From Saccostrea cucullata (lineage: Eukaryota), in contig NW_026940638.1 in the NCBI RefSeq assembly GCF_032062105.1, positions 620,001-684,000 on the forward strand: 64,000 bases of DNA, given 5' to 3'. Below are positions 15,501 to 37,634 of the stretch, one piece after another (position 1 is the first letter of the stretch; the number at the start of each line of letters is the position of its first letter). The translations under genes and the position numbers were made by a program. The notes under the pieces were generated by a model. It made no database searches and was not told where the DNA came from. It was given only the letters and a program-made list of their open reading frames with translations.

Positions 15501-18074
15501 GGACTGCATCACAAATATCATTAAAAATACGTGTAACTATCATGAAACCTCGCCCCTTTCCCTCCTTTCGGTTAATATTTTATCATTCACTACCCATGCC
15601 CTTAAATTACAGTTCAGAATTCTTGCTAGGATTGCCTGTTGAAAATATTTTACCCATTGTAATACCTTCTGTAAAAAAGGTTTTATACTTGTGGAATGGT
15701 TTTGTTTTTACCCCCCCCCCACCCCCTTTTCAGTTTCCTGGTCACCCGTGTTTTGATATTGAAATGTTCAGATTATGACACCTTATTGATAAATGAAGTA
15801 AACAAAAATATGTAGCTTTATCGATATTGTCAATCCAGACCGAATAAATTATATTCAAATGATTTCATAAAATGGCAAGAAAAAGATCCATAAGTAACGT
15901 TTTAGTTGAATATATTAAAGCATCGTTTTAATATACTTACTATAGTTGTGTAGAATATACAGACTAAGCCTACTGCCCATATAGAACCCCATAATGTAAA
16001 ACCAGTCACTGGAAAATAAGTACAAAACGATGTACATTCTAAATGTCAAAGTTATTATGATAAAAAAAACACAGTTTACATCAAACGAGTTAAACTTTTT
16101 AAATTTCACCAAAACTGACCTGCATTCAGGGCTAAAGATGGGGCATAAAGCACAATGGACATGTACAGTGTCTGAAGAAGAAAAAAAATACATCAGTAAC
16201 GCGTTCCTTGAGGAATATTGTACATAAAGTAAATATAGTAAATATATACCTTTCTTACTGTCAGATTGTAAAATTCTCCATTCGTATTAATTTATTATAA
16301 TAAGGACCTAATACAATTATACTATTAACATAAATTATGTACATGTACTAGTTTTTAACCACATTTTAAAGAATGAATAGCGCAATCTTCTTTATGAGAA
16401 AGATGTCGACTCCGATGATGTGATGTTCCACGACCATATAAACATTTCGTACATTGAACTCTTCGACCCTTAACATCTCACTCCATGCTCATTAGGTTTG
16501 CCATTTCCGAAAAGTTAAATCAAACAAAAAGGGACGGTTGTTTACAACTGCTTCCGCCATCAAGTAGCTGTCGTTAATTGCATAGTAGTTACTGTGAGTG
16601 TTTTGGTTAGCTTAAAATTAATGATGATCTGACCAATACAAAAAGATTAGTATACTGAACATATGTCTTCCTGGATTATAAAACTTTGTCAATACCCCCC
16701 CCCCCCCCCAAAAAAAAAAAAACCCATCAAAACGTGAGAGTGAGATACATATTAAGCCTTCTCTTTTTCTATATATTAAGAAAGAGTAAACTAAATTTGT
16801 TGACAGAGTTTGATATCGTTATTTGTCAGTATCTTGTTTAACGTCCCTCTCAAGAATTTTTCAGTTATATGGAGACGCCAGCTGAGGCCTGTTCAGCAGA
16901 GAGAACTGCCGGAGCGCTCACCAAAATTACTATTGGAGGTATAAGGAATTTTGGCGAGCGCTTGCGAACGTTCGCTCTGCTGAACAGGCCTCTGTTTCAT
17001 AGCGTTAAAAATCAAATCGCATCAAAAATTCAAAATATCACAGTTTGGACCATTTCTTTGAGATCTTAAATACACTTTCACCCAAGAATATCAGATTCCT
17101 TGAAACGTCCATGAATATATTAGCAGAGATTACAATCCAAAACGTGACTTCATTTCAGATCTGTAATCTGTGACCTAAATCTACTTAATATATCCTTTTT
17201 TTCTTTTGTAAACAGCGTGCGTTCATTTCGAGCACTCTCTGTTCAAGCCTATAGCTCAGGAGCAGAATTCTTTATTAGCGTGATTGAATGCATTTGAACT
17301 GTTTGGTCGCTGTGTAACTTGACCTAAAAATTGAACAGCAGCTGTGGCAATGCAAACTGTGTTTTGTGGATGAAGGCTTTCATTTGTAAACAACTTACCA
17401 TTTGAGTTACATATATAATGGCACCAATCGTCCTAGAAACCTTCCCGAATCGATGTTCCAAATACTGAAATTATAGTTTGAAAATGATAACCATTAAATA
17501 TCTGTTCCCAAAATTGTGTGATTTCCAGAATAATTGGCTTTTAAATGGGTTGTACATGAGATTTAAGATGGTTGTACATCTTCGATTGCTTTTCTTTACA
17601 GATGGTGGAATATTCTTATAATATATTTTATTATACAAGAGAGCTAGCTCTATTTCATGTATGATTTGCTGTACCTGTAAAATATGCACGCTCAGATTTT
17701 ACCTCGTATGAACTGGTTACGCGAAGTCTGTAAAATACAGGCATATAAACATGGGCTCCTCCAAGAATAACGAAAAAATAGCCCAGACCTATCCACCAGT
17801 AAATCGTGGTGTAGTTGTACATTTCAGCAGGTGTCCCCAGTAGAGTGATAGCGGACATGAAGCTAGCCAGGAGGGACAGGGCCACTGGAATTGGGTTCAT
17901 GTCCCCTCCAGCCAGTAAAAAGTCCTTGGTGTTAGATTTCTGACGGTCTTTGATGGCATAAAATAATCCAATTCCTGCAGAACAAAACAATAATCCTGCA
18001 AAGAGAATATAATCCACAATCTGGAATTCATTTTTCTGTCCGGTCTGAAAACTGTACAGTCGATCTCCCGCCAT
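9506..18074 (-). CDS. SLC5A8: Sodium:solute symporter of the SLC5A5/6/8/12 group (SMCT-like), 15 exons, ~649 aa
   Basis: Exons 18074-17703, 17464-17399, 16171-16120, 16008-15941, 15066-14912, 14817-14677, 14281-14152, 13418-13330, 11982-11864, 11757-11690, 11478-11392, 11067-10814, 10260-10160, 9952-9834, 9634-9506 (1950 nt, phases consistent). Motifs [62 protein letters not shown]. The exact subtype is uncertain. Confidence 0.88.
10393..10604. mobile_element. MITE (TACTGTA...TACAGTA type)
   Basis: Inverted termini tactgtacatcact / agtgatttacagta with repeated ttcgcga motifs. Confidence 0.55.
12330..12945 (-). mobile_element. Helentron/HINE-like element with internal ~150-bp tandem repeats
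   Basis: Reverse copy of the 31816-32778 family: caaggtcaaggt units, gacagacagac microsatellite and terminal cttttgcgaaagcgg hairpin. Confidence 0.65.
16886..16992. mobile_element. ~107-bp palindromic mini-element next to a SINE 3' fragment (16835-16880)
   Basis: 18-bp perfect inverted termini gaggcctgttcagcagag / ctctgctgaacaggcctc, plus internal gagcgctcaccaaaatt / aattttggcgagcgct. Confidence 0.6.
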
Positions 18075-18552: not shown

Positions 18553-18560
18553 TGACGTGG
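18553..18560 (+). promoter_or_regulatory. UPRE/CREB3/XBP1-type TGACGTGG box upstream of ARF-like copy 1
   Basis: The same 8-mer occurs at 20448-20455 (copy 2) and 24321-24328 (copy 3, minus strand), 72-87 bp before each ATG. Confidence 0.5.
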
Positions 18561-18628
18561 AGGAAATTACTATATTAAATAAAGAATCATATAAGCATGT
18601 AAATTACTGGTCATTTATGTGATACGAA

Positions 18629-19267
18629 ATGGGAAATTTGGCTGGTATATTTTGCCGACGTGAACAAATTCGGATTTTTATGTTTGGTTTGGATGCTGCC
18701 GGGAAAACTAGTATTCTTTACTATTACCATCTCGGAGAAGTTGTCACCACCATTCCTACCATGGGAATGAATGTAGAGACAGTGAAGTTTAAGAGTTTTG
18801 ACTTGACAGTATGGGATGTAAGCACTCGTGATAAAATGAGGGTACTCTTGAGGCATTATCTCCCGAACACTCAGGCCGTGGTGTTTGTCGTGGACAGTGT
18901 CGACAGAGACAGAATTCCAGAAGTGAAAGAAGAACTACATAGAATTTTGTCTGAAGATGATCTAAAAGGTGTTCCTATTGCTTTTGCTTTGAACAAGAGA
19001 GATCTTCCCAAATGTTTGACAAAAGAAGAGATAATGATGAAATTAGAGATACAGAAAATCCAGAAAGACAGGCCATGTGAAACTTTTCTGACGACAATCA
19101 GACCTACAGACAAAGTAGAAACGGAGTTCGATAAATTAATGGAATGGATTGTCAATGAAGCAACCAAACGACGAAATGAACTTGCATTAATAAATCCAAA
19201 AGTGGATCGATTTTCTACCTACGTATGGCAACCAATCATGACATTAAGAAATATGATGTTTGAATGA
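18629..19267 (+). CDS. ARF-like small GTPase, copy 1 (212 aa, intronless CDS)
   Basis: Gly2, GLDAAGKT P-loop, TTIPT switch I, WDVSTRDK (canonical WDVGGQDK), FVVDS, NKRD; ~30-aa C-terminal extension. Confidence 0.9.
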
Positions 19268-20519
19268 AGATATTATATAAGTCTATACACTTTTGACAAC
19301 AATTCTGAGAGTTTGAAAAAATTTGGTCTGTAACAATATTCACTAGGAAGTTTGTACTGGAAGAACAAATCAAGCTGGCAATCTTCTGGTAAATTAAATT
19401 GTCTAACTTTTCGTTTAATTCCATACATGGCTTTTTATCTCACATCCAGAATGAATAGATCTAAACCCTCTGTAGATTCAAATTAAATTGTAGAACAGAA
19501 TAAATAATTTAAAATACAGCAAAATTTCATTTTCAGAGTTTATTGTTCAATTATAATTTTTTTTTTTTATAAAAGTAAAACATTTACTAATCTAAGTTCA
19601 TTATTCAAAATTGTTACATGAGATCATTTTGTTGCCTTGATGCGAATACTAATTAGGTTATCTGCAATTTGGATACTGACTTTACTAATACCGATGACTG
19701 GATAAAGTCATTATTTTGAAATAATCGCTCATCTTTGATTCAACTGCTTTCTTTTAATGATATGTTTGAGAAGTAATTACTAGTAATGCATTCTTTACAG
19801 CATTAAGAATTACCAATTAAAAATGACGATATTTCAATTTATCAGCTGTTTTGATTTTATATAGCTTTGTATTTAGATTGATTGTACTCAGTACTACTCA
19901 CCAAACTGCAAAATACATCAAAATGCGTATTTCTGAACAGTTTAAGCTTTTGCGAAAACATTTGAATATGAAAAAAACACTAACTATATTTTATCGAACT
20001 TAACAATTTGTTTATCAAAATGAAAAATATACTTGTAATTATGTTCGCCGCAAAAGGGTTACTATTTACATCTTCGTGATGTTTCTAGTGGTAGTTTTAC
20101 TGAATGACAAATTTTTCTTATACGTTAGTCATCTTCTTCCTATTTTCCAATAAGTTAACTTAAGTAAATCTACATCCGTAAGTATGCATATATTTACATG
20201 TGTACTATTCCATGGTAAGGGCGCTGAAATTAGTGATTAGCTCATTCTCTTTATTATGCTGATCAACTTAATTCCTCGCATTCTTTAAAGGAAGTCATTG
20301 CAATTGAAAAGAAACGTTCAACGTGTGTATGAGTAACTGTGGTCAAACCAAAGAATTTAATAAGGGACAGTCGTCTTTGGCCAAACAAAATTCAGGTCGG
20401 GCTCGATGTTTGTATTTAAATTATTTACATTGACAACATGTAACATATGACGTGGAACTAATACATGCTTGATAATATTTTATTAAATGGATACACCTTA
20501 ATAATAATTTAGGGACAGT

Positions 20520-21143
20520 ATGGGGAATTCGTCAGCCAAGAGACAACCTGTGAGGATTTTGGTATTGGGATTGTACGACTCAGGGAAAACCAGCATTCTA
20601 CACTACTCAAAACTTGGAGAAGTTGTAACAACAACACCTATGATTGGCTTTACTGTCGAAACTTTGATAAACAAGCGGTTAATTTTGACTGGGTGGGATG
20701 TAGGGGGTCGAGATAAAATTCGTCCCTTGTACAGACATTATTATTCAAATAATGACGCCTTGATTTTTGTTGTGGATAGTAGTGATGAAGATGAACTTGA
20801 AAGAGCTAAAGAGGAATTAATGAGACATTTGTCTGAGACCGAGTTGCAGAATATGCCACTAGCCATTGCCTTTCACAAATGGGATAAACATAAGCACATG
20901 ACAATCTCAAAGATGCAAGATGCATTTGGAGTGTCAGGAATCAGGAAAAGTAGACCTTGTGAAGCATTCGCGACGTCAGTGATTTGTGATGATGGAATGG
21001 AACTTAAGCGAATGTTATACTGGGTCTATGAGGTCGTCAGAGAAAGGCAGGACTCCGTCAAACAGACTCAGTCTAATGAGGCTCACTCTCTAGACTTCGT
21101 GGAACGCGCTCTAACGAAATTCAAAACTCTACTATTTAATTAA
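20520..21143 (+). CDS. ARF-like small GTPase, copy 2 (207 aa, divergent paralogue)
   Basis: MGNSS myristoylation consensus, GLYDSGKT, WDVGGRDKIRPLYRHYY, FVVDSSD, G4 altered to HKWD. Confidence 0.88.
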   Translation: MGNSSAKRQPVRILVLGLYDSGKTSILHYSKLGEVVTTTPMIGFTVETLINKRLILTGWDVGGRDKIRPLYRHYYSNNDALIFVVDSSDEDELERAKEELMRHLSETELQNMPLAIAFHKWDKHKHMTISKMQDAFGVSGIRKSRPCEAFATSVICDDGMELKRMLYWVYEVVRERQDSVKQTQSNEAHSLDFVERALTKFKTLLFN

Positions 21144-21925
21144 TTTGTGTAGATATCAGATATTCAGACGCTTGGAGAAAAAGTATTGAGGATAATTCTC
21201 GGATAAATTACAGGGCTCTAACAATTTTTGTGTGTAGTTTTAATCATGATCTTCTAAACACAAAAGGCAGCAACATGGTTTTTGGATGCTGAAAAAACAT
21301 TAATACAGCGTGAAAGTATAAACATTTCATCTAGCTTATATCGAATATACTAAGATATTTTTCAATAATAGAAACAATAGTTAAATATTATGTGAAATAA
21401 AGCAATATACCCAACCTTTCATCAAAAAGTGCGGGTGACAAACATTCACAAAATTAATGGTGTTGATATGTACTTCAAATACTTGTACAAACTACAAAGT
21501 ATATATTTGATAAATGTACAGTAAAAATGAATAATTTTTTTCTCTCTGTTCACTTCAAATTTTTTTCAATAATTATACTTTAATTCACTGCATCAAACTT
21601 AGGTAAATTACACATTAACACTGAAAGAAAAACCTAGTGAATTTAACTAGTGTGCCTCGTAAAACGTTGGTCGTGATTAGTAATCTTTCTGTTTACCGGC
21701 TAAGATTGTAAGTTGTGGAGCGGGAGTCGTATAGATACTTAGATACATAGTGAAAGTTACTTATCAATTCTAGATTTACTAATAGTATCTAGTAAATATA
21801 CCCAATACCTAGTAAAACTATTTTAAGTTAGTGAATTTATGGACATTGAATTTACTAATTTTCGTAGTGATTTTAACTAGTTATTTTTTACATGTTACAA
21901 ATGCTTTTTTCAAGTCAAAGGGGAA

Positions 21926-22106
21926 CCTCACTCCTCCTACACACCTAATCCCACCTCTACAGTTTCCGGGGGCCTGGGTTTATGATCCTCACTCCCCCTA
22001 CACACCTAATCCCACCTCTACAGTTTCCGGGGGCCTGGGTTTATGATCCTCACTCCCCCTACACACCTAATCCCACCTCTACAGTTTCCGGGGCCTGGAT
22101 TTATGA
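21926..22106 (+). repeat. Tandem repeat, 3 x 61 bp
   Basis: cctcactcc...cacctaatcccacctctacagtttccgggggcctgg units start at 21926, 21987 and 22048; a related single copy lies on the minus strand at ~24790-24870. Confidence 0.85.
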
Positions 22107-22329
22107 CAAGTTCACGGATATATGTATTGTTTGTCGATTTTAGATTGGTCTTGTTCTTTATCTTCACCTTTTCTCATTGATTGTGTATGTGACCTATGTG
22201 CTCAATATTTTGAAGTTTTGAAGAAGTCGCCTTAACGAATTTGAAGACAGCTAGAGTAAAATGCACTAAAGCGTAGTTTTTATAAAAATTCTGAGGTAAA
22301 ACAGATAGATTTTGATTTCATCGGCCGTT

Positions 22330-23040
22330 TAATCCCGGTTAAGTCCCTGCAACCGGATACTGCCTGCTGAAGACCGCATGTTAATGTCAGAGATTTTGTT
22401 GCCCACAGAATATCGATGTCTGGCACTGGCCAACACAGTATCACCCGACTTCTCAATAGACAATCGCCCGCGTGGCGCAGTGGTTAGATCGTCTGCTTTA
22501 GAGTCGCGAAGTAAGGAGTTAATCCTTACGTCGCAGGTTCGAATACCACTGTGGGACGTGGAGACCTGCCCTTCGGATGAGACCGTATAAACCGAGGTCG
22601 CGTGTCGCAGTAGGTGCTGGCACGAAAAAGATCCCTCCCAGCTCAATGGCCCTTAGTGCCGGGTAAAGGACAAAATTTGCAGCTCTCCACCGGCAAGTGG
22701 TGGCGTCTCCATATGAGTGAAAATTTTTCGAGAGGGACGTTAAACAATATACAATCAATCAATAGACAATATATTTGGGATGAAATAGAAAGACGGTAAC
22801 GTCGTTTACAGAAGCAGTGTTTGAGATTTAAGCGAAAAAGACCAATATTTGGAACAGCATACCCAAGACATTCTTTTCTTTTAACAATTTGGCGTCATCA
22901 TTCAATGAGATGACGGTGTCAAACATGCGTAAACGCAAATAGTGACCGTGGTATTGTTCGTAAATCGCCTTTCAAGCACCAGAGTCTTTCTAACGTCCTG
23001 TACAGGTGACATTATGAGGTAAATAAAAATCAAATCCAAT
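22330..23040 (+). mobile_element. Tc1/mariner transposase 3' remnant, interrupted by a SINE
   Basis: Encodes degenerate QQDNARPH-like and YIWDEIERR motifs; 22770-23040 is the reverse complement of ~25280-25555. Confidence 0.65.
22465..22759 (+). mobile_element. tRNA-derived V-domain-type SINE
   Basis: Head gtggcgcagtggttag...ggttcgaat, core ggatgagaccgtataaaccgaggtc, (caat)n tail; 11-bp TSD caatagacaat at 22454-22464 and 22760-22770. Confidence 0.85.
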
Positions 23041-23602
23041 TATATATAAACAGTACATTTCTGTATCATGTTACGAAATAGATTGTATTGTGTTTCATTT
23101 CATTTTATTTTATTCAGGTGAAAAAATATCACAGAATGTCATGATTCACATTTTAAAAAATACAGATTAGTCCAGTATATAAAAACCCGCATGTTATCTC
23201 AGCACTATGCTACTAAATAAAGATCTAAGTTGAACATATGATTACCCACAAAAGCCTTTTAAATAGCTTATTTCCAATGGGGTCCTCAAATAACAAATAT
23301 GTTAGTAACAAAAATTACATTACTGTTGGAATTTAGGCAGGGTATTTTCTTAAATATAGCATAATGCTTTGAAAATGACGTTTCCTAATAACTCATTTTA
23401 CCTTAAGAATTATCACAATAATGCTTATAAAATTAAAATAAATAAATAGATTGTATTGTGATTTATATTTTATGAATGATTTATCGAGTCATCCTAAAAG
23501 CAAAGTTAGTGATCATATCATATTGTGTACAACCCCATATTTTTTTCTGCATCAAACCGACAAAGTGATCACAAGTAGTGTCCGAAATAAAAATGTATAT
23601 TG

Positions 23603-24241
23603 TCATTCAAACATCATGCTTTTCATTTTCATTATTGGTTGCCATACGTAGGTAGAAAACCGATCAACTTTTGGATTTGTTAATGAAAGCTCATTTCGTC
23701 GTTTGACAGTATTATTAGTTATCCATTCCATTAATTTATCGAACTCTGTTTCCACTTTGTCTGTGGGTCTGATTGTTGTCAGAAAAGCTTCACAAGGTCT
23801 ATCTTTCTGGATTTTCTTTATCTCTAATTTTTCCATTATCTCTTCTTTTGTCATACAATTGGGAAGATCTCTCTTATTCAAAGCCAGAGCAATAGGAACA
23901 TCTTTCAGTTCATCTTCAGACAAAATTCTATGTAGTTCTTCTTTCACTTCTAAGATTCTGTCACTGTCGACACTGTCGACGACAAACACTAAAGCCTGGG
24001 TGTTCTGGTAATAATGCCTCCAGAGTGGTCTAATTTTATCTCGAGTGCCTACATCCCATACTGTCAAGTCAAGATTTTTAAATTTCACTGTCTCCACATT
24101 AAATCCTATGGTAGGAATAGTTGTGACAACTTCTCCAAGATGGTAATAGTAAAGAATGCTAGTTTTTCCAGCAGCATCCAGACCAAGCATCAAAATCCGC
24201 ACTTTTTCACGTCGGCAAAATATACCAGCCAAATTTCCCAT
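23603..24241 (-). CDS. ARF-like small GTPase, copy 3 (212 aa), inverted paralogue of copy 1
   Basis: [51 protein letters not shown]; closest of the four copies to canonical ARF. Confidence 0.92.
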
Positions 24242-24888
24242 TTTGTTTTACATGAATGACCAGTATATCAGTATATCTCTACATGTTTAAATGCTTCTAT
24301 ATTTAATACTGTCATTTCCTCCACGTCAATAAGGATTGCAACATCGGAAGTAAATATTACAAAGGTAAATTATAAACAATGCGTGTGGACATCGATCCCG
24401 ATGTAAAAACACGATTGAACTATCCACCTTATGTTATACTTCGTTACATGTATTAAACTGTTTCTTAATCTGCCACTTTAAAATTGTTGGGTATCAAAAC
24501 CGCCTGCATAAATGTGGGAACACCCTCAAGTTAATTCAACAGATAAGACGGATCTCAAAAACTTACACATGAAATATGCATCAGCCGATGAATTATCTAT
24601 TTTACCCGCACAGAAATTCTAACTATAAAAAAAGATTAGTGCACGTCACTCTACCAAGTTCTCTAAGGCGGCTGCTATCGAACTTCAAAAAATTGAGCAC
24701 TGTCAAATAAATGAAAAAAGATGAATATAAATAAACATCAATCGAAAATAAAAAAAAAAACAAATCTGTGGACAAAGACATTAGCGCAGACCCCTGGAGT
24801 CACCAGAGGTGAGTCCAGATATTTAAGAGGAGTGAGGATTCTTTTGACTGGCCACACCCGCCATGAACCCCATGTACTGACCAAATAG

Positions 24889-25185
24889 ATAGTCAAATTT
24901 AGTATTTTAACTCCCTCTCGAGAATTTTTCACTCACATGGAGACGCCACCACTTGCCAGTGGAGAGCTGCATATTTTGTCTTATACTCGGCACTGAGGGC
25001 CATTGAGCAGGGAGGGATCTTTTTCGTGCCAGCACCTACTGCGACACGGGAACTCGATTTATATGGTATCATCCGAAGGACCGGTCTCCGTGTCCCACAT
25101 TGGGATTCGAACCTGCGACGTTAGAATCAAATCCTTACTTCGCGACTCTAGAACAGATGCTCTAACCTCTGCGCCACGCGGGCGT
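24889..25185 (-). mobile_element. V-domain-type SINE (reverse orientation)
   Basis: Reverse complement of 22465-22759; possible TSD ccaaatag. Confidence 0.85.
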
Positions 25186-25269
25186 CCAAATAGTATAAAA
25201 TATGTCAACCAAAAACGACCCAATGGAAGATTAAATTGGCTTTCAAGGTCATTATAACGACTATACAAT

Positions 25270-26340
25270 TTAAGAAATGCTGACTTGGATTTTTCATACG
25301 TCATAAAACGACAATGAATTGTAGGACGTTAGAAAGACTGCACAGTGCTTGAAAGGCGATTTTCAAACGATACCGCGTATGACCACTATTTGCGTTCACG
25401 CATGTGTGACATCGGCTTCTCACTGATGATGCTTTTGTTCAATAATGCTTAGAAAGTATTGTTCTATTGATTAATTCTTGGCCTAAATCTCCAACACCAC
25501 TTACTGGCTTCATTAACGACGTTACCGTCTTTCCATTTTATCCCAATGTATTTGTGATATGTCAGGTGTAAGTGATGACCATGGAAAGGTTTGCATCGAT
25601 ATTCTGATGGGCAATCAAGTTTCTGACAACAACGTACGGTCTGGCATTATCCTGTTGCAGGATAATAGGATATTTTTCGTTTCCGTGAGAATAGATTTTT
25701 TCGTCGCTGTAGCCAATCCCTGTCAATTATGTTTCCATTGATGATCTGAAGATGTGTCCTATGGCTTGCGTAATTCCAACCCCTCCAAAAGTGTATTAAG
25801 TGTAGTCAACAGTGCAAGCATCCGAATAAGGCTCCCCATCCCCGCGACTAACCCTCCAGCGACCGTCACAGATATGCAAATTAAATCTCGATTCATCAGT
25901 GAACAAAACATTGGTCCGATCTTGAAAATATGTAACTCTTATGTTTCCGACACCATGCTAATCCTGCAGTTCGATGACGTTGAAGCAATGTTGGATGCAT
26001 CGCAGGACGTCTACTGATTTTAAATCCACTTAAGCGAATACGTAAAGTGCTTGCAATTATGCGCCTAAAACCCGGGATACTAGGAACAGTCAATGTAGCC
26101 GTCGTCTGAAAACGATTTCATAGAAGACCTAGCCTATAGTTATCAATTAATCGTGGCAAACCAACGTCACCAGGAGAATGTTCTGATGTCGATCCAAAAT
26201 GTTAGACTGTCACTGATTCTTATCAGTAAAAAGAGATTTTTGAACAAACTCGGTTATTTTGGCACGCACTCTTTGACACGAACACTATGGTTGAGATACA
26301 ACGGTTACATAAAAAAGAACATGCTTTCCACGAAAAGTAA
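25270..26340 (-). mobile_element. Degenerate Tc1-family transposon
   Basis: Minus-strand frames give HPTLLQRHRTAGLAWCRKH, VLFTDESRF and QDNARP motifs with stops and frameshifts. Confidence 0.75.
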
Positions 26341-26588
26341 ATAGAATGGGAAATCCTAATCGCCGGCGTGGCGCAGTGGTAAGAGCATCTGCTCTAGAGT
26401 CCGGAGTAAGGAGTATGTCCTAAAGTTGCGGGTTCGAATCAAACTTTTGGATGTGGAGACTGGTCCTTCGGATGATACCGCATAAACGAGGTTTCTTGTC
26501 ACAGTAGGAACTGACACAAAAGTTCCCTCTCTCTTAAAATAGTCCTGAGTGCCGAGTATAGGACAAAATTTGCAGATCTCGGCAAATG

Positions 26589-28485
26589 TCAGTTCCATCT
26601 AACCCTCCTAATATTACACCAGCAATCGAAGATCTAGACGTAGACTGGGGACCACCTACTAAAGTGGAAATAATAATAGCCTTAATACAGATGAGGAATA
26701 GCAAGTCAGGAGGGCCTGATAATATACCGGCCGAGGCACTTAAAGCTGATTTTCACAACTCAGCCGACATACTCCACCCACTTTTTCTGAAAATATGGGA
26801 GGTACGTAGAAACAATTCCAGAAGAATGGAAAGAAGGATACCTCATCAAACTTAAAAAAAAAAGAGACCTCAGCAATTATGCCAACTATAGAGGAATAGC
26901 ACTGTTTGATGTTCCAGGGAAGGTATTTAATAGGGTCATACTAAAAGAATGAAAAAAGAAGTGGATGATAAACTACATGATCAACAAGCCAAATTTCGTA
27001 AAAATAGATCTTGGACGGATCAAATAGCAACGTTGCGCATTATCATCGAGCAATGTACTGAGTGAAACTCCTCCCTTTATGTAGTCTTCATAGATTACGA
27101 GAAAGCCTTTAACGGTGTTGACTGGGAGACAATATGGAAACTTCTGGGGCCTTATGGAGTTCCTTGTAAACTTGTAAATATCATCCGCAACTCTTATGAA
27201 CACCTGATATGCAGGGTCATACACGGAGGACAAATATCGGAATTATTAGAAGTAAAAACAGGAGTTGTCAGGGATTACTATTCTCATAGTCATTCTTTCT
27301 GTATCTTCTTGCAATTGACTAGATAATGAAATCATCAAGAGACAAAGGGAGAAATGGATTACAGTGGTCACCATGGTCACAGTTAGATGATCAAGACTTC
27401 GTGGATGACCTGGCACTCCTATCACATACCCAGGCAAAAATGCAGAAGAAAATTACAACAGTGGCAGAAACATCAGCACAGATAGGACTTAATATCAATA
27501 TTGCAAAAACAAAGATCCTAAGCACAATCACATGCTTAAACATAGCACGAAAGGATTTTGATCGTATGTTGTTTAACGTCCCTCTCGAGAATTTTCACTC
27601 ATACTGAGACGCCTATACTTGCCGGTGGAGAGCTGCAATTTTTTTGTCCTATACTCGGCACTTAGGGCCATTGAGCAGGGAGGGATCTTTTTCGTGCCAG
27701 CACCTACTGCGGCACGGGACCTCGGTTTATACGGTCTAATCCAAAGGAACGGTCTCCATGTCCCACAGTAGGATTTGAATCCATGACGTAAGGATCAACT
27801 CCTTACTTCGCGACTCTAGATCAGACGCACTAACCACTGCGCAATGCGGGAGACTTAGCATGAAAGGAAATAGAGGAAGTAGAATATTTCACCTACTTTG
27901 GCAGTATAGTGGACCAACAAGGAGAAACTGAAGCCGACATAAGAGCAAGAATAGGAAAGACCACAGTAGCAATCCTGCAACTTGGAAACATCTGGAAGAC
28001 CAAAGGAATTACAACACGCACCGAAGTTAGGCTTTTTAACAACAATGTTAAGACTGTACTCTTCTATGGTTCTGAGACATGGAGGATGACCGTAACCAAA
28101 AACAGACATGATCCAGACATTTATCAACTCTTGTCTGAGACGCATCCTCCAGATTAGATAGCCAAACAAAACCAGTAACATCAATTTGTGGCGGGGAACA
28201 AACCAAGCCCCTAAAGAAGAAGAATTAATGCAGAGAAAAAGGATGTGTATAAGGCATACTTTACGCAAGGTCCACAATAACATCACAAGGCAAGCCCTAT
28301 CCTGGAACCCCCAAGGAAAACGTAGGCCAAAGAACATCTTGCGGAGAGATTTGGAAGCAAATGTCAAAAGAATGGGCAAGAATTGTAAGAGGTAGAATGC
28401 ATTGGTCTGGATAGAGGGGCCTGGTGGAATCTTGTCAGCGTACTATGCCCCAAACGAGGTAGCTGGCATAACAAAACAAACAAAA
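26589..28485 (+). mobile_element. 5'-truncated RTE-clade non-LTR retrotransposon (pseudogenised RT)
   Basis: GPDNIPAEALKA, NYRGIAL, FIDYEKAF, DFVDDLALLSHT, VLFYGSETW and ALSWNPQGKRRP motifs; (caaa)n tail; TSD tcggcaaatg/tcgacaaatg. Confidence 0.88.
27556..27854 (-). mobile_element. V-domain-type SINE inserted inside the RTE
   Basis: Reverse copy flanked by TSD tagcacgaaagga/tagcatgaaagga. Confidence 0.85.
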
Positions 28486-29129
28486 TCGACAAATGGTGGC
28501 GCCTCTATATGAGTGAAGATTTCATGAGACGGACGTTAAACAAAATACAAACATGTAAATCCTGACCCACCCACCCCAATGAAACTAGCCAAGATTAAAA
28601 TTACAACAAAAGTATTCTCTACATGAAAACATGCACAGCAATGTATAAATTGTGGATCTAGTGTTCTTTAAAAGGATTTATATTCCAATGTTACATGTAT
28701 TGGCTTTTTTGGCATATTGTACTGCGGCACTCTAGCCTCACCGTGGATTTTCACATGTGTAATCAAAACTACGTGGAAATCTTAACACATTCATTTTATT
28801 TCTAGTGGTCCTGCCTGCTGTTTTTAGGACAAAATAATCCCTTGTAGAAGAACTCAAGGGTGGAAAAAGCCATGCAATATAATGCCAAGATTGCACCTGA
28901 GATGCTAAGAAGATAAGAAATAAAGAAAGGAAGGTAATGGTGCAGAAAGCGGACTGGAAAATGATAAATTACTAGTAGTGGGCATGAAAGCAAAAGTAAG
29001 GAGGGTTTGGAAACGAGAGAGAGAGAGAGAGAGACGTGGAATACCCGCAGTCAAGGCAAATATTCAGAAAAGGAAATAAATGATGAACTGAGAAAAGCCA
29101 GAACATAGGAAATTGTAGGAAAAGGTGCA

Positions 29130-29290
29130 GATGGCTAGGTGTCTTCCCATGCATCATAAACCTAGGATTTTTACAGTTCTTCGCCAAAACTACAGCTACC
29201 ACAATCACTCTCTAAGAAAAATTCAAGGTGGCTTATTATAAAGCCAATCATGTTCTCACCTTGGGGGACTCAAAAGAGGAGAATATTCAA
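29130..29290 (+). mobile_element. Hero-like (R2-group) non-LTR remnant, fragment 1
   Basis: Degenerate WLGV...KLQLP...FKVA...LTLGDSK motif. Confidence 0.5.
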
Positions 29291-31815
29291 AGATAAAAAA
29301 AAAAAAAAAGTAAAAATTGAAAATTTTCTCAGTCACTGCTTACTCCCATCCCCAAGTTCCTAGCAAGGAGTTGAAACGACGGATGGATGGGCCTGCCTGA
29401 TTACGTTCTGATTATTGTAGGTGTCATTGCTTCTGACATCAAGGCGAGGCTTGAGGACAACAAGGAAAGACTGGTGACACTGGAAAGACCATTCACGGTA
29501 CAAAAGAGGTGATGAGGACCATGAACCTTAATCACAGCTACCACAGTTATAAGCAACCTAGAAAAAATAAATCTTCCTGGAGGATAGGAGGTTGAAAGGC
29601 TCAATACAGATTTATGACGACAACAACCAGGCTTCTACAAAGGACTCTGAATGGCAAAGAGGTTGACGAAACTTGATGTCACTGTTGAAAGAATTGCAAA
29701 ATTACATGAGGCTTGCGAATGCACCAAACATAGGCAGGGTGTCGACCTGAGGTCATTCGGCAGCAGTGCACAGTTCTGTATTCCAGCTGGCGAGACACAA
29801 GCAGTTTATATTTAGGAGATACACCGCAGATCTGAGGACTTTTATATAGCTGAACATACACAGAAAGAGATCACACCTCTGATGAAGGAGGAAAACAGTC
29901 ACGTTTAGATAAGTGTGCATGACAGCAAGGATCAATTGGCTTACAATGAATGACAATGAGAATTCGATCCACCTTGGTGATAGTCTGAACGCCTTCCTAG
30001 ACATGGCACTGCTAGAGAGCTTAGAACAACAGGCAAAAGCCCTTCCAGAAATTGTGTTTGCATCGGTAAGTGAAAGTTCTGGTATTGAGGACGTAAGGTA
30101 ACAGAAGAAAACATCACCAAACCCAACCAAAAAGAGAAGTTACATTGATAAGGCAAAGAGCTTGGGGTCTTGAAGACAAAAAATATTCGTAAAAGCCAAT
30201 ACAGCTGAGAGAAAAGGTCTATACCAACTTTAGAAAACCTCGCGAACACATTTTAATTCCTTCTAGAATAAAGAAAAAAGAATGAAAAGGTGGTTGTTCA
30301 CCACTTTTCATAAAAAAATAAAAGGGTTGATTGTCCGTTTTGTTTGTATGTTGTAAATTATTTTTGGCTTTTATATAATTTTGCTGGTTACTGGATAATC
30401 TAATAAACTCCCGGGATCGTTCTGCGCTTTTCGCATGTGAGAGGTTTTAGGAACAAGGTAAACAATTCTCTAATTCCCTGGTTCTGACCAGACAAAGTTA
30501 ATCAGGTTATCAATGTCCCAGTTTGCATCTATTCTCTCTAGGATTTATTCACTCTTTTCCTGCATGTACATATCGCATTACAGATTATGGGGAGTGGCGG
30601 AAAACTGCAGCAAAAACTGAACAGCTTTCAAAAAGACCTATTTCGATTCACTTATATGAGTAGTAGCTTAAGATTAGGAAAATTCCGGACGTTTGAGGGC
30701 CAGCAAGGAGGAAATGGATGAGCCAACTGAGACAATATTCTAGAATAGAGATAGTATAACGAGCCCCTGTAACGTTAGACTGAAGTGAACCATCTATTGG
30801 AAAATAGTCTCAGATAAGGAAGGAAAGAAAAACTACACCAGTTCGAGGTCCTAAGAAGTTCCATACAAAGATCGGTATCCAAAGTATTTGTGACGTCTTT
30901 GAATGGGATGTGGAGAAAAAGGGAACGCCCTGCCGGGTAGTTGGAAAACAGTATAGGGTGTGATGATTCAGGCAAAATTAATCAGACTCGCTTCTAAGTT
31001 GGGGGAAAAATCATTGCAATTTTTGCAAAAACATTAACATCGTATATGACCAGACAATTTATTGCAGAAAATAGGTATTCCCGGTATTTCCTGTATGCTT
31101 AAACCATACAAGAGCAATAACACAGCTGAAAAGAAGACTAGAATTAACCAAAAAGACTTATGTCTGTACGGTGGGACATCGCAAATGCATACGGCTCTAT
31201 AGCTCTGTACATGTACCACACTCGCTTTTTATGAAGGCACTACAGCACATCATATACATGTACCTGCATGATAAGATCCATCAAGAGCTTCATGTAATTT
31301 GATGTCATCTAACTGAGGACAATTTACAACAGAGTGGCAGAGGTTGGAACGAGGAATTATGAATAATGTAGGGAATCTTTCCAGCCCACAGTGTATCAAT
31401 GTAAATATGTAATGGAACTTTTTAACACGACACCAAGATGTAAGTGTGGAAATGGACATCGATAATACATTAAACGAATTATACATGAAGTCTCATTTAA
31501 TTCATTTTTACCTTCAACTTACTTCAATGAACAATTGGATCTTCATCTCATTCGCTTATATATAGATGCAACATTATTACGAATCCAAACTGTTCTTGCG
31601 GATATAAGGATAGTCATCGTTTTTCTTTTGTGTGTAGAAAATATCTAAAGTTAGACGTTTAATGTTGAACTCTTTACTTGTAGTCAAAAATGTAAAAATG
31701 TTAAATGTACATACTCTACTTTTGGGGAGATGAATCATTATCTTTGCAAGAAAAGGAAAGAGTATTTGTTATTGTTCAAAAATTTATTCAGGATACTGGT
31801 CGTTTCAATTAACAA

Positions 31816-32778
31816 TTATTGTCCCCCGCTTTCGCGAAAGCGAGGGGACATTAAATCTCATTCGTCTGTCCGTCCGTCCGTCTGTCTGTCCGTCAGTCTG
31901 TCCGTCCGTCACAAAAACTTGAACCTTGCCCATAACTTTTGATTTAGTGGAGCTATGACTTTCATATTTCATGTGTATATTCCTTGTCACAAGACCTTTC
32001 TTTGGGTACCACCAAATTTGTCCTTTTGACCTTGACCTTGGAGTTTGATCCATTTTTACACAAAAATTCCAAACTTTTACTCAGGTTATGACTTTTGAAT
32101 GGTCGATATTAAGACTTTCATATTTCACATATATATACTTTGTAGCAAGACCTTTTATTGGATACCAACAACATTGACCTTTTGACCTTGACCTTGGTGA
32201 TTTCCGAACTTATCAAAAAACTTTAACCTTGACCATAACTTTTGAATGGTAAGGGCTAGGGCTTTCCTATTTCATATATATAATTCTTGTGAGAAGACCT
32301 TTCTTTGAATACCAAAAACTTTGCCCCTTAGACCTGGACCTTGGAGTTTGCCCTACTTTTCAAAAACTTTGACCTTGGTCACAACATTTGAACAGTAGAT
32401 ACCAGGACTTTCATCTTTCACATATGTATTCCTTGTGGCAAGACCTTTCATTTGATACCAACAACCTTGACTTTTTTACCTTGACCTTGGAGATTTTTTG
32501 TACTTATGAGAAAACTTTAACCTTGACCATAACTTTTGAATGGTAAGGGCTAGGGCTTTTATACTTCACATATGTAATTCTTTTGAGAAGACTTTTCATT
32601 GGATACCAAAAACTTTAACAATTTTGACCCCTTGACCTTGGAGTTCAGTGATAATATTCTAAGTAGATGACATATGATAGGGCGTTCATATTAGACACAA
32701 AATGTCATTAAAAAATGACATCTCACCCAAAAAGACACCGAAAGCGGGGGGACCACAATTCTTTGAATTTGCTTGTTT
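31816..32778 (+). mobile_element. Helentron/HINE-like element with ~150-bp tandem array
   Basis: 5' hairpin cgctttcgcgaaagcg, (gtcc/gtct)n microsatellite, ttgaccttgaccttgg units, 3' end ccgaaagcgggg...gaatttgcttgtt. Confidence 0.75.
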
Positions 32779-33414
32779 GTATTTACTACCTCTTTTGAAA
32801 CTATTTTTTATGGTTGTTGTCGTCATTATAATAAACATAATATTAATTGATATTTTTGGCAATACTAGCTATTGTTTTCATGTATATTATTGTAAAACAT
32901 TGTAAATAGTGTATGGCTTCTGAAATTTTATGTATGGGAGAAGCCTATCTAAGTTTTTGGAACTTGTGTCCAATCCTTGTTGTCAATAAAATATGTTCAA
33001 AACAAAACATCTCATTCGCACAAAACTGAATTGTGTTTCCTTGAAATTTTTGAATAAAATATTTGAAGAAAATAAAGCAAGTCCATACTTAGATTCTTTT
33101 ATCACAGAATACAAGACTTAAATTTGCAAACAAGTGATAGATGCTGTGAAAATAAATAACATTCTTAATAATAAACGAGTTCAGTTTTGCATTCCACCAT
33201 ATATCAAGCTGAAGCATACACCCTGCATTTTACAGATACAGATTTTCAATGACAAAAAACCCTACAGTGCCCAGATATTGAAAATCTTACACAAATCCAT
33301 TTCAGTATTCTTACTTTTCTTTTTTATTTCAACTTCAGTCCCTTTAAGAACATTATTACTGTTGATGTTAATATAGGTTAAATGAAGACTTAATTACAAT
33401 CTTTGTATAATGTC

Positions 33415-34400
33415 CTAAAACCAGGCTAGTTTTCACCCTAGGAGACTCAAAAGATGAGTAGATTTGAAGAGAAAGAAGAGAATTAAAAACTAGAAGGAAA
33501 TTGTCAATCCAGAAATGCAGTCCAGCATGCAAAAAAAACAGACTTAAAAATACAGATAGAATGAGCACAATAGTATAGGTGAAGCAGGGACATGGAACCA
33601 AACGTAGAGTTGGAGACTAACAATGCAGAAAAAACAAAAAAAAAACATGGAGTGGTCCAGGCTAAGATTTAGAAAATGGAATAAGAAATGAGAAAAAACC
33701 TAAGTAACGGAAAAGTGAGGACAAGGCACATATACCCCCGGTATAATGTAGGCAACAACAGAAATAAAGTTAAAATGGGGAGAAATTAGGCGGATGGAGC
33801 CATACCGCATTTGTTCCTTCTAATATATGTCTATAACCTACTCCCTTCACCAACAAAACTGCACTTTTGAAGACTTGAAGAAAACATAAACTGCGAGACA
33901 AAGGCGAAGACAGACACTCTAGAACATATTTTATCATCTTGCAATGTTGCTTTAACACAAGGCAGATCATACAGCAGGTAACGCGAACTAGTACTGAGAG
34001 AGCTAGCAGACAATCTAGAAAAGAACAGAAAAGGGGACGGAACAGATGAACAATTCATCAATTCTTTAAAAGAAGGTGAAACACCAAGAGTTGCCCAATA
34101 CCCTAATCGAGAATCCTATCAGCTTCAATGGAGATGTAGGTGGAACTTGGTCGAAAACTGATATTACCAAACAACATACAGACAAACCTGTTTCAAACAT
34201 ATTGCTTTGGTCTTATTACAGTATGAAAGTCATAACAGATGAGTTAATTGTATTTTGGGAAGAGAGGTATGATAAGGCCTACCAGAGAAAGAAAACGTTT
34301 CAAGATCTGGCAGATGAAGTATGCAGGATTCGAAACGACCAATGACGGGTAGACCTGGCTGGCGACGTATGTGGATCCAGAGTAAACCATCTTGATTTTT
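33415..34400 (+). mobile_element. Hero-like non-LTR remnant, C-terminal zinc knuckle/REL endonuclease region
   Basis: Degenerate RLVFTLGDSKD, MEPYRI..VYNLLPSP, TLEHILSSCNVALTQGR, LRELAD and ILLWS...ELIVFWEERYDKAYQRK motifs. Confidence 0.7.
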
Positions 34401-34673
34401 TAGGTATCATATTATCATGGATTTTCCCCCTACACATTCCTTTGTGAAATGTTGACCCTGCGCCACAGAGGTCATGACTTGCAACCTTCATGAAGATGCT
34501 AAATTAGATCTGAAAGGCTGGTATATCGACCCTGTTAAATTTAAAGAGATTAGAATTGAATTTTCTTCTGCTTATTGTCACTCAACCAGTCAATGCCACT
34601 ATCTCTAACCCTGTTGTCAAAATTTGAACACACTTCATATGGTCTGAGATGCTTGCATGTTATGGACCTGCAG

Positions 34674-34719
<46 letters not shown>

Positions 34720-34793
34720 CATTTTGTCCGTCGTCCGTCCGTCTGTCTGTCTGTCTGTCTGTCCGTCTGTCTGTCCGTCTGTAAACTTTTCAC

Positions 34794-34830
<37 letters not shown>

Positions 34831-36431
34831 GATCAAACTTGGTACAAAGCATCCTTGGGTGAAGGGGAATTTAAATTGTTAAAATAAAGGGCCAAGCTCC
34901 CTCACAAGGGGAGATAATCAAGAAAAGACAAAAATAGGGTGGGGTCATTAAAAAATCTTCTTCTCAAGAACCACTGGGCCAGAAAAGCTGAAACTTACGT
35001 TGAAACATTCTGGGGTAGTGTAAATTCTAAATTGTTCAAATCATGACCCCCGGGGGAAGGACGGGGCCACAATGGAGAATCAAAGTTTTACATAGAAATA
35101 TATAGGAAAAATCTTTGAAAATCTTTTTCTCCAGAACCACTGGGCCAGAAAAGCTGATACTTATGTGGAAGCATCCTGGTTTAGTGTAGATTCTAAATTG
35201 TTCAAATCATGACCCCCGGGGGAAGGGCGGGGCCACAATGGGGAATCAAAGTTTTACATAGAAATATATAGGAAAAATCTTTGAAAATCTTCTTCTCAAG
35301 AACCACTGAGCCAGAAAAGCTGAAACTTATGTGGAAGCATCCTGGGGTAGTGTAGATTCTGAATTGTTCAAATCATGACCCCCGGGGGAAGGGCGGGGCC
35401 ACAATGGGGAATCAAGTTTTTACATAGAAATATATAGGAAAAATCTTTGAAAATCTTCTTCTCAGGAACCACTGGGCCAGAAAAGCTGAAACTTATGTGG
35501 AAGCATCATGGTATAGTATAGATTCTAAATTGTTCAAATCATGATCCCCGGGGGAAGGGCGGGACCACAATGGGGAATCAAAATTTTACATAGAAATATA
35601 TAGGAAAAATCTTTGAAAATCTTCTTCTCAAGAACCACTGGGCCAGAAAAGCTGAAACTTATGTGGAAGCATCCTGGTATAGTGTAGATTCTAAATTGTT
35701 CAAATCATGATCCCCGGGGGAAGGGCGGGGCCACAGTGGGGAATCAAAATTTCACATAGAAATATATAGGAAAAATCTTTGAAAATCTTCTTCTCCAGAA
35801 CCACTGGGCCAGAAAAGCTGAAACTTATGTGGAAGCATCCTGGGGTAGTGTAGATTCTGAATTGTTCAAATCATGACCCCCAGGGGAAGGGCGGGGCCAC
35901 AATGGGGAATCAAATTTTTACATAGAAATAAATAGGAAAAATCTTTGAAAATCTTCTCCAGAACCACTGGGCCAGAAAAGCTGAAACTTATGTGGAAGCA
36001 TCCTGGGGTAGTGTAGATTCTAAATTGTTCAAATCATGACCCCCGGGGGAAGGGCGGGGCCACAATGGAGAATCAAAGTTTTACATAGAAATATATAGGA
36101 AAAATCTTTGAAAATCTTCTTCTCCAGAACCACTGGGCCAGAAAAGCTTAAACTTATGTGGAAGCATCCTGGTATAGTGCAGATTCTAAATTGTTCAAAT
36201 CATGACCCCCGGGGGGAAGGGCAGGGCCACAATGGGGAATCAAAGTTTTACATAGAAATATATAGCAAAAATCTTTGAAAATCTTCTTCTCAAGAACCAA
36301 TGGGCACATGGAAGGATCCTGGGGTAGTGTAGATTTCAAAATGTCTACATTATGATAAGTGGGGTAGGTTGGGGATGCATTATGTATTACAAGGGGCGAA
36401 TCTGGTAAAGAACAGAATGGTCAAAGCTTCA

Positions 36432-36464
<33 letters not shown>
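34674..36464 (+). mobile_element. Pearl/CvA-like (Helentron-associated) element carrying ~8 x ~167-bp satellite monomers
   Basis: Termini ttttagctcacctgagccgaaggctcaagtgagc and aggtgagcgatgtggcccatgggcctcttgtt; (gtct)n; repeating agaaccactgggccagaaaagctg from ~34960 to ~36300. Confidence 0.85.
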
Positions 36465-36466
<2 letters not shown>

Positions 36467-36663
36467 AGATTTAAAAATATTTCATTGAATCAAATATAAA
36501 ATCAGAGACATATGATATTATATGTCTCTGACAAAACCTTGACCACCTATATATAACTGTTCCATAGACCAAGTATTTTTACATCGGACTCGATGTTCAT
36601 GTGAGATTGTTTATTTTCTCTGGTTAAGCCATTTAAGGAATACGCTATTCCTGTAAGCCATAA

Positions 36664-37634
36664 ATGGGGAATTTGGCTGGTATATTTTGCCGACGTAAAA
36701 AAGTGAGGGTTTTGATGTTTGGCTTGGATGCTGCCGGAAAAACAAGCATTCTATTCCATTACCATTTCGGAGAAATTGTCACAACAATTCCTACCATAGG
36801 ATTTACTGTGGAGACATTGAAATTCAAGAATCTAGACGTGGCAGTTTGGGATCAGCAGTGGCGGATTTAAGGGGGGGCGCACCCGGCGCGCGCCCCCCCT
36901 AAAATTGTCAAAGTTAGCGTAAATCAAATATGTCTACTTGGTAGACCTCATTTTTACCCTTCAAAATCTCTAGAATCCAGTTTGGGCCCCCACCAGGGCT
37001 TTGGTAGACCTCATTTTAACCCTTCAAAATCTCTAGAATCCAGGAGCTTCCGGGGGCTTCGCCCCCTGGGCCCCCACCAGGGCTTGGCCCTGGACCCACT
37101 GGGGGCCTCAAGGCGGCCCCCAGACCCCTTGCCTATTTTGGCGCCCCCCCTAACTCAAGATCCTGGATCCGCGCCTGGGATGTAGGTACAAGGGATAAAA
37201 TGAGGCCGCTCTTGAGGCATTACTACCCAAAGACTAATGCTTTTGTGCTTGTTGTAGACTGTATCAACAGAAATAAAATTACAGATGCAAAAGAGGAACT
37301 ACATAGACTTGCGCCTTCAGAAGTTGAAGTGAATGGTGTTCCTATTGCTGTCGCTTTGAATATGAGAGATTTTCCCGATAGTATGTCAAAAGATGAGATA
37401 ATGGAAGAACTAGAAATTGAGACCATTCAGAAAGATAGGCCTTGTGAAGCTTTTCTGACGACAATCAGACCCACTGACGAAGTGGAAACGGAGTTCGATA
37501 AATTAATGGAATGGATTGTCAAGGAAACAGCCAAACAACAAAATGAACCTGCATTAAGAAATCCTAAAGAAGATCGTTTCTCTGCATACATATGGCAACC
37601 GATTATGAAGATGAAAAGCTTTATGTTTGATTGA
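36664..37634 (+). pseudogene. ARF-like small GTPase, copy 4, disrupted by a MITE
   Basis: 36664-36852 joined to 37182-37634 restores a 213-aa ORF (WD|VGTRDKMRPLL); the insertion adds an in-frame TAA at 36868-36870; G4 motif is NMRD. Confidence 0.85.
36856..37177. mobile_element. GC-rich hAT-like MITE (322 bp)
   Basis: Imperfect TIRs cagtggcggattt / ggatccgcgcctg; degenerate TSD ggatcag/ggatgtag; internal ~43-bp direct repeat. Confidence 0.75.

Follow-up and report, generated by a model that had tools for sequence, protein, structure and literature searches.

The 64,000-nucleotide stretch of the genome of the oyster Saccostrea cucullata that was analyzed here (contig NW_026940638.1, positions 620,001 to 684,000 of the forward strand; called the window in the following, with a GC content of about 0.34) harbors a cluster of ARF-like GTPase genes that consists of three intact genes and one gene interrupted by a transposon. 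In all four copies the position of the catalytic glutamine of switch II, Gln71 of ARF1, is occupied by an arginine. The genes very probably belong to Arl20, a holozoan clade derived from ARF1 that was named by Vargová et al. (2021, Genome Biol Evol; PMC8358228), and they are new, divergent members of a known family. The overall best explanation, which is held with moderate confidence, is an Arl20 cluster encoding switches that would be insensitive to GTPase-activating proteins (GAPs) and would place the arginine on the γ-phosphate.

A previous reading of the sequence alone (the sequence-only reading) had described the cluster as four intronless ARF-like GTPases. The absence of introns was verified and three of the genes were found to be intact, but the fourth turned out to be split by a transposon. 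All arginine codons (Table 1) and all switch-II motifs given in that reading were reproduced, as were the G4 motif HKWD of copy 2, the TTI or TSV of the G5 region, and the retention of Gly2, the P-loop and switch I, including its threonine. Copies 1–3 are single-exon open reading frames (ORFs), each of which matched the Pfam family Arf (PF00025) with E values from 8e-41 to 5e-58. The G4 motif of copy 3 is NKRD, and copy 2 has the P-loop GLYDSGKT and a tail that ends with KFKTLLFN.

Relationship of the cluster to the Arl20 family

To collect relatives of the oyster proteins, 1.8 billion representatives were searched with a profile, and a word-based search was run in addition. ARFs of 215–232 amino acids with the motif WDVGGRDK and a C-terminal tail were retrieved from bdelloid rotifers and from clams (Mercenaria and Mactra), a scallop (Ylistrum) and a pearl oyster (Pinctada), and the rotifer proteins matched the Adineta vaga Arl20a/b sequences printed in the supplement of PMC8358228. 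In that study Arl20 had been delimited through three shared intron positions and a focused phylogeny, and in its species table human, Takifugu, Drosophila, Daphnia and C. elegans are entered without Arl20. The Arl20 sequences printed there have the arginine in eight of nine species (amphioxus, Amphimedon, Adineta, Lottia, Capitella, Saccoglossus, Capsaspora and Salpingoeca), and Ciona has a glycine. The main text contains none of the terms glutamine, Q71, catalytic and hydrolysis, and a literature search for "Arl20" led to this one paper and its preprint and nowhere else. The family has therefore already been described, and its arginine signature appears not to have been discussed. The proposal of a lineage-specific subfamily, which had been made in the sequence-only reading, was not supported, as the arginine is the ancestral hallmark of Arl20, whose holozoan-wide extent had been delimited in PMC8358228. 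The same reading had considered that the subfamily might already be described; this was the case for the delimitation of Arl20, but not for the arginine, which is not discussed in the main text of that paper.

A maximum likelihood tree was calculated with IQ-TREE (LG+C20) from 60 ARF-family sequences. A single clade with a support of 99/92 united 43 of the 44 arginine-bearing sequences, and the 44th (P0356) was placed just outside of it (87/67). The Arf1, Arf4, Arf6, Arl19-like, Arl4-like and Arl6-like sequences were all positioned outside this clade. It was subdivided into the rotifers, a group of Pinctada, heterodont clams and metagenomic sequences (99/93), and a group of scallop and oysters (98/89). 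The oysters were monophyletic (100/97) and sister to the intronless scallop gene, and they were split into type A (99/99) and type B (100/96), each of which is oyster-wide. An origin of the genes as recent retrocopies of oyster Arf1 or Arf6 was rejected on the basis of this tree. When only the columns of the G domain were used and the arginine column was removed, the tree with a single clade was slightly better than the free search and was not rejected (approximately unbiased test, p 0.54). One candidate anchor for Arl20, the Amphimedon protein P0314, was dropped, because it is a tandem ARF1 model with a glutamine.

The oyster proteins resemble Arl20 in an ARF1-like G domain, Gly2, the switch-II arginine and a C-terminal hydrophobic and basic tail, and the tails of oyster and other Arl20 proteins can be aligned over a C-terminal extension of about 30–50 residues. 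As read here, Arl20 would be recognized by the arginine in switch II (D-V-G-G-R-D-K), by Gly2 as a putative myristoylation site, and by about 40 additional C-terminal residues, the last of which would form a short helix with many hydrophobic and basic side chains. The oyster genes differ from the family as defined by three intron positions in that they are intronless; they are also tandem A/B duplicates with long branches that have lost the glycine of DxxG, the alanine of G5 and the NKQD motif.

The best sequence matches in the PDB were ARF1 (about 190 bits), ARF6 (about 179) and ARL1 (about 152). The fold is the same as that of ARF1 and ARF6 (template modeling score about 0.9), switch I and the interswitch are nearly identical, and the N-terminus has the same length as that of ARF6 (HsaArf6 as printed in the supplement of PMC8358228). 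However, ARF1 and ARF6 are ArfGAP substrates of about 180 amino acids that have the catalytic Gln71 or Gln67, NKQD and CAT and are devoid of a tail, whereas the oyster proteins have an arginine instead of the glutamine, NKRD or HKWD, no G5 alanine, and a length of 207–212 amino acids including the tail. An assignment to Arf1, Arf4 or Arf6 is thus not in accordance with their features.

The oyster genes have no introns, as their ORFs run colinearly with both the genome and the RNA contigs. Single-exon genes also exist in Pinctada, scallop and A. vaga (two of its four Arl20 genes, a and b), and the coding sequence of the Mercenaria gene is interrupted by two introns. The authors of PMC8358228 filed the single-exon genes Arl20a/b of A. 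vaga as Arl20. The best matches of the Mercenaria Arl20 in the S. cucullata genome were the four copies of the window, and no further arginine-bearing or Arl20-like ARF locus turned up in this genome. As the other ARF-like exons that were found have a glutamine, with the exception of one that has a lysine, the cluster represents the whole Arl20 complement of the oyster. The exon with the lysine (G000:C1037:297651-297851, L018) reads WDMGGKPSIRKLWKHYY, contains WDMGGK, and probably codes for the ARF domain of a TRIM23-like gene.

Conservation and possible role of the switch-II arginine

In an alignment of 38 Arl20 proteins Arg67 was one of 16 invariant columns, which also comprise G20, G25 and K26 of the P-loop, D63 of DxxG, and K123 and D125 of G4 (copy 4 alone is devoid of K123). 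T27, M1 and G2 were nearly invariant. Five synonymous codons (CGT, CGA, CGG, AGG and AGA) encode the arginine in 14 coding sequences. The prediction that the arginine is retained by selection in spite of codon changes was therefore borne out, and its conservation extends to the other bivalves, i.e., Pinctada, scallop, clams and other oysters. Because the residue is invariant in 38 relatives, compared to glutamine or lysine in the other ARF-like exons of the genome, its occurrence is far beyond chance. A novelty of oysters or mollusks is excluded by the arginine in rotifer, clam and further holozoan Arl20 sequences.

Other motifs are less well conserved in oysters. The DxxG glycine is present in 21 of 22 other Arl20 proteins, and the respective position is T, G, S, F, L or N in oysters. 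The G5 alanine, also found in 21 of the 22, is replaced in oysters, where two residues are inserted in addition, and NKQD of G4 has become NKRD or HKWD. Judged from the compared sequences, the loss of the DxxG glycine, the erosion of G4 and G5 and the tandem A/B arrangement are oyster-specific. The loss of the glycine suggests that classical flipping of switch II may matter even less in oysters than in other Arl20 proteins.

A structural model of copy 3 was built with AlphaFold2 using the 38-row alignment. The mean predicted local distance difference test (pLDDT) value was 76.7, with values above 90 for residues 80–180 and low values for switch I. The model deviated by 2.0–2.5 Å from the GTP forms of ARF1, ARF6 and ARL1 and by 3.8–4.6 Å from GDP forms, which weakly suggests that it is nearer to the GTP form. 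The C-terminal helix (residues 192–210), which was predicted with low confidence, may act as an amphipathic anchor.

GTP binding by the proteins is likely, because the glycines and the lysine of the P-loop, the threonine of switch I, the aspartate of DxxG and the lysine and aspartate of G4 are kept. A classification as nucleotide-free pseudoGTPases does not fit, the P-loop and G4 residues being retained with the exception of K123 in copy 4. ArfGAP catalysis requires a glutamine beside the arginine finger of the GAP, and thus an arginine at this spot should block it. In agreement with the sequence-only reading, canonical ArfGAP-assisted hydrolysis is unlikely, as the catalytic glutamine is absent. 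As a tentative proposal, which we favor over the alternatives but regard as neither probable nor improbable in itself, Arl20 may be a GTP-binding, ArfGAP-insensitive switch with the arginine on the γ-phosphate. Guanine nucleotides would still be bound, and the side chain of the arginine would touch the γ-phosphate and keep switch II in its GTP form. It would also fill the site at which the arginine finger of an ArfGAP would sit beside the glutamine. The outcome would be a long-lived "on" state that does not respond to ArfGAPs and would be controlled via expression, loading or the C-terminal helix, and not by a canonical GAP cycle.

It is possible, albeit somewhat unlikely, that the proteins are instead hydrolysis-dead and constitutively GTP-bound ARFs, that the arginine merely removes the glutamine, and that activity is set by expression and turnover. 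The cluster proteins might indeed be "hydrolysis-dead", as the sequence-only reading had assumed: the glutamine needed for ArfGAP-assisted hydrolysis is gone from every copy, and oysters can do without the DxxG glycine and without the alanine of G5, as would be expected if the catalytic cycle were irrelevant. There are precedents in other families. RAS Q61R, Rnd and RhoH are GAP-resistant and GTP-bound through the loss of the catalytic glutamine, and RAS Q61R is strongly impaired in hydrolysis. However, RAS Q61R is a somatic mutant, and Rnd and RhoH belong to the Rho family, in which the replacing residue is not an arginine and is not the sole change. Within the ARF family, TRIM23/ARD1 as well as Arl13 and Sar1 (His) have G domains with a replaced catalytic glutamine and a non-standard control of hydrolysis. 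They differ from Arl20 in the residue (Lys, Gly or His), in architecture and clade, and in the absence of an Arl20 tail. Two points speak against a mere loss of hydrolysis. First, the arginine is invariant from Capsaspora to the oysters, although flanking residues vary, whereas the site should be free to drift if hydrolysis had simply been lost; this holozoan-wide invariance indicates that the arginine has a positive role. Second, the arginine of LRRK2 at this position is reported to be compatible with hydrolysis and even to promote it.

An alternative that is judged to be unlikely is that Arl20 proteins are self-sufficient slow GTPases, in which the switch-II arginine is a built-in catalytic residue and a sensor of the γ-phosphate, so that they cycle without ArfGAP. 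This would be in agreement with the strict conservation of the arginine in Arl20 and with the identity of the DxxGR motif to DFAGR of LRRK2. However, intrinsic GTPase activity is almost absent from ARF-type G domains. In LRRK2, the sole precedent that has been studied in depth, R1398 is located at the position of Ras Q61 within the DFAGR motif (PMC2851569), and in a 2026 preprint it was modeled on the γ-phosphate and assayed as a sensor that also aids hydrolysis (PMC13345514). The variants R1398H and R1398A had a lower stability of the GTP state and a lower kcat, suggesting that the arginine contributes to both, and it was called unique among classical Ras-like GTPases (PMC13345514). Yet the contact to the γ-phosphate was modeled and not observed (PMC13345514), and in an older study R1398L raised the hydrolysis by LRRK2. 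The ROC domain resembles Arl20 in that the arginine directly follows the DxxG glycine at the Q61-equivalent site, but LRRK2 is a multidomain kinase of the Roco family with a dimer/monomer cycle.

It is tempting to speculate, although this is rather doubtful, that Arl20 is an ancient family in which the switch-II arginine reads or attacks the γ-phosphate GAP-free, by the mechanism that is at present considered peculiar to LRRK2, and that oysters have extended this principle by dispensing with the DxxG glycine. In that case the arginine alone would couple the nucleotide state to switch II in oysters.

Selection, expression and decay of the individual copies

The positions of the four copies and of the neighboring symporter gene are compiled in Table 1.

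Table 1. Arl20 cluster and adjacent symporter gene in the window.
Feature	Position	Strand	Remarks
SSF (sodium:solute symporter) gene, first coding exon	17655..18074	-	Pfam SSF PF00474; syntenic neighbor of the cluster
Copy 1, type-A Arl20 paralogue, 212 aa, intact	18629..19267	+	Arg CGT 18827-29
Copy 2, type-B Arl20 paralogue, 207 aa, intact, WDVGGRDK	20520..21143	+	Arg CGA 20709-11
Copy 3, type-A Arl20, 212 aa, intact, WDVGTRDK	23603..24241	-	Arg CGA 24041-43
Copy 4, 5' piece (Met1 to ...VAVWD)	36664..36852	+	Pfam Arf E 6.5e-18
Insertion dividing copy 4	36853..37181	.	Non-coding MITE-like repeat and duplicated target TGGGAT
Copy 4, 3' piece (VGTRDK... to stop)	37182..37634	+	Arg AGG 37191-93; G4 NMRD

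Type-A proteins have about 211–212 amino acids and a tail that ends with ...WQP.MKMK.MMF. Type-B proteins have about 207–208 amino acids, the P-loop GLY.SGK, the G4 motif HKWD, and the tail end ...K.K.LL. Both types are present in Saccostrea, Magallana and Crassostrea, the three genera sampled for synteny. The Arl20 genes of S. echinata, M. angulata and C. virginica likewise have an SSF gene on the opposite strand immediately upstream, and the orthologue of copy 2 was found at the same position in S. echinata (85% identity) and M. angulata. Copy 3 is 88% identical to its homologue in S. echinata, 73% to that in Ostrea edulis, and about 64% to those in Crassostrea virginica, Magallana gigas and M. 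angulata. The oyster homologues are annotated merely as "ADP-ribosylation factor(-like)" or "uncharacterized", and a literature search for an oyster ARF expansion gave nothing relevant.

In one C. virginica assembly (GCA_053477285.1, L038) the type-A and the type-B gene are both frameshifted or truncated, and the RefSeq proteins of that cluster (P0121 and P0122) are intact; the frameshifts could be assembly indels or segregating null alleles. Two proteins of the oyster type-A clade from Logan contigs, P0164 and P0135, are highly degenerate, with 8–15 changes at conserved columns. Switch I is scrambled in both, and the tryptophan of the WD motif is replaced by leucine in P0164 and kept in P0135. 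Both have retained the arginine and the C-terminal tail ...LMKMK..F.

Pairwise dN/dS values were 0.14 for copy 3 and S. echinata A, 0.10 for copy 3 and O. edulis, 0.16–0.19 for copy 2 and S. echinata B, 0.26–0.40 for copy 1 compared with copy 3 or S. echinata A, and 0.36 for copy 4 and its S. echinata orthologue. At columns with a conservation of 90% or more, copy 3 deviates at one of 46, copy 2 at six of 49 (three in common with its orthologue), and copy 1 at six of 47, including I45M, F47M and P72V (own numbering; I54M, F56M and P81V in A3 columns). Thus, copies 3 and 2 are under purifying selection and copy 1 is relaxed. Copy 3 is the best-preserved, conserved type-A gene and copy 1 is a relaxed duplicate; type A would have been duplicated in the S. 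cucullata genome, giving rise to both.

Expression was examined in the interval 18450-24400 with contigs from four sequencing runs, all of a single organism; three of these are metatranscriptomic RNA-Seq libraries, and the fourth is guessed to be RNA. Copy 3 and its flanks (23261-24303) as well as copy 2 and its flanks (20372-21387) were covered colinearly by RNA-library contigs with about 95% identity, and a single short RNA contig with 93% identity matched copy 1. Unique intergenic stretches within this region had no RNA-contig coverage. This pattern fits to unspliced transcripts of copies 3 and 2, including untranslated regions, in a close relative. Among the differences listed for the contigs, none was found at the arginine codons 20709-11 and 24041-43. 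The region 22430-22827 between copies 2 and 3, which overlaps with a minus-strand ORF (22329-22646), had a summed RNA-contig depth of about 4,000–87,000; the contigs had many joints and loose ends, and the region looks like an abundantly transcribed interspersed repeat. Based on the Pfam matches, the dN/dS values and the RNA contigs, the genes were judged to be real, conserved ARF-derived GTPase genes that are at least partly expressed, in support of the sequence-only reading.

Copy 4 is divided by an insert of about 326 bp. The repeat core (36856-37177) has the ends CAGTGGCGGAT...GGATCCGCGCCTG, and the target TGGGAT is duplicated at the insertion. The repeat is present in high copy number, with more than 2300 first-look candidates of about 90% identity in the 1.17-Gb S. 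cucullata genome, and 40 scored candidates yielded 54 matches with 80–94% identity. Three further copies start with CAGTGGCGGAT, end with GGATCCGCGCCTG, and are flanked by clean 5-bp target duplications. Members of the MITE-like family have a length of about 320–345 bp and an internal direct repeat of about 85 bp (36856-37177, L032-L034). An intron as the cause of the break was ruled out by the high copy number of the repeat, the target duplication and the absence of an in-frame GT..AG at the borders. With the insert removed, copy 4 is an open frame of 213 amino acids, and therefore the disruption is recent. The gene departs from the family at 8 of 46 columns that are at least 90% conserved; these include the G4 lysine, as its NMRD motif has lost a residue that is otherwise invariant in the family (K136M when counted by A3 alignment column, and K123 in the numbering of copy 3). 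The S. echinata orthologue is devoid of Gly2 and has a deletion in strand 1. Because of the lysine loss and the insertion in S. cucullata and the damaged orthologue in S. echinata, the copy-4 branch is decaying in both species. Copy 4 would be a member of an older type-A branch that is now broken by a transposon.

That the whole cluster consists of decaying retrocopies or duplicates without a function of their own is regarded as improbable. All copies are intronless, copy 4 is split and has lost the G4 lysine, copy 1 has the elevated dN/dS and six changes at conserved sites, and the S. echinata and C. virginica lesions described above also point in this direction. However, copies 3 and 2 are open frames with dN/dS values of 0.10–0.19 and coverage in RNA libraries, they have syntenic orthologues in at least three oyster genera, no intron-bearing parental Arl20 was found elsewhere in the genome, and the Arl20 genes of Pinctada, scallop and A. 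vaga are single-exon genes as well. The low dN/dS values and syntenic orthologues of copies 3 and 2 are not those of processed pseudogenes, and copy 4, with its transposon insertion and the loss of the G4 lysine, partly matches this class. Decay thus applies to copy 4 and perhaps copy 1 alone.

Very improbable is the suggestion that the proteins are decoys, either for bacterial toxins or effectors that depend on ARF (cholera-toxin-like or Vibrio MCF-like ones) or for host guanine nucleotide exchange factors or GAPs. In its favor, oysters cohabit with Vibrio, and the sequence has remained ARF1-like in switch I, in the interswitch and in most of switch II. Complexes of ARF with cholera toxin A1, with MCF of V. 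vulnificus and with SopF of Salmonella are among the structural neighbors of the model, but this shows the ARF fold only. The toxin-decoy idea of the sequence-only reading received no support here. Pairwise dN/dS values were all well below 1 and gave no sign of positive selection, and the arginine and the tail are already present in Capsaspora and choanoflagellate Arl20, so that they are not an oyster counter-measure and their pre-animal origin is a poor fit.

Several points weigh against the favored explanation of an Arl20 cluster with a GAP-insensitive switch. Arl20 is defined by three intron positions, which intronless oyster genes cannot show. The anchors of the tree were rotifer and bivalve proteins retrieved in the searches, the Arl20, Arl19 and TRIM23 sequences of PMC8358228 having been left out, and the tree of the G domain alone was poorly resolved. 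The RNA contigs are about 95% identical and thus stem from a related strain or species, they carry neither strand nor level, and contaminating DNA as their source cannot be fully excluded. The pLDDT of the tail helix is about 50, and its hydrophobic moment is barely above that of shuffled sequences (0.02–0.24). The DxxG glycine, the G5 alanine and the G4 asparagine of type B are gone in oysters, and hence nucleotide binding or switching could be weakened instead of locked. Lastly, GTP binding, hydrolysis rate and GAP response of Arl20 are all deduced from sequence.

Further ARF-like genes and implications for the family

At least six ARF-like genes with several exons each are arranged in tandem at G000:C20141:50900-82200 (L010-L013, L017 and L020). 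Their exons contain VETVSPVKGVSFTVWDVGGQ and match the Arl19 sequences printed in PMC8358228, which points to an Arl19 expansion in the oyster. The second half of a fused S. echinata model (P0325) has the motif WDLGGRDR, and is an Arl19-like copy with an arginine. Elsewhere in the window a reverse-transcriptase fragment (RVT_1; 41518-42009, minus strand), an exon with a polycystin domain (50925-51395, minus strand), and a single-exon ORF of 745 amino acids with a secretin-family 7TM domain, which looks like an adhesion GPCR (61725-63962, plus strand), were found.

As a consequence for annotation, the oyster genes that are now called "ADP-ribosylation factor" or "uncharacterized" can be renamed Arl20-like, and copy 4 should be flagged as transposon-disrupted. 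Arl20 is known from a single phylogenomic paper, in which the human, fly and nematode entries are without a member (PMC8358228). The family is a natural counter-example to the claim that LRRK2 is the sole Ras-like GTPase with an arginine at this site. The family-wide invariant arginine, which was kept in spite of the loss of the DxxG glycine in oysters, leads to the testable hypothesis of an ARF-type switch that operates independently of GAPs. If the switch-II arginine indeed reads or attacks the γ-phosphate without a GAP, as speculated above, the oyster proteins of about 210 residues would offer an uncomplicated natural system for the study of DxxGR chemistry and would represent a new kind of regulatory cycle among ARFs.

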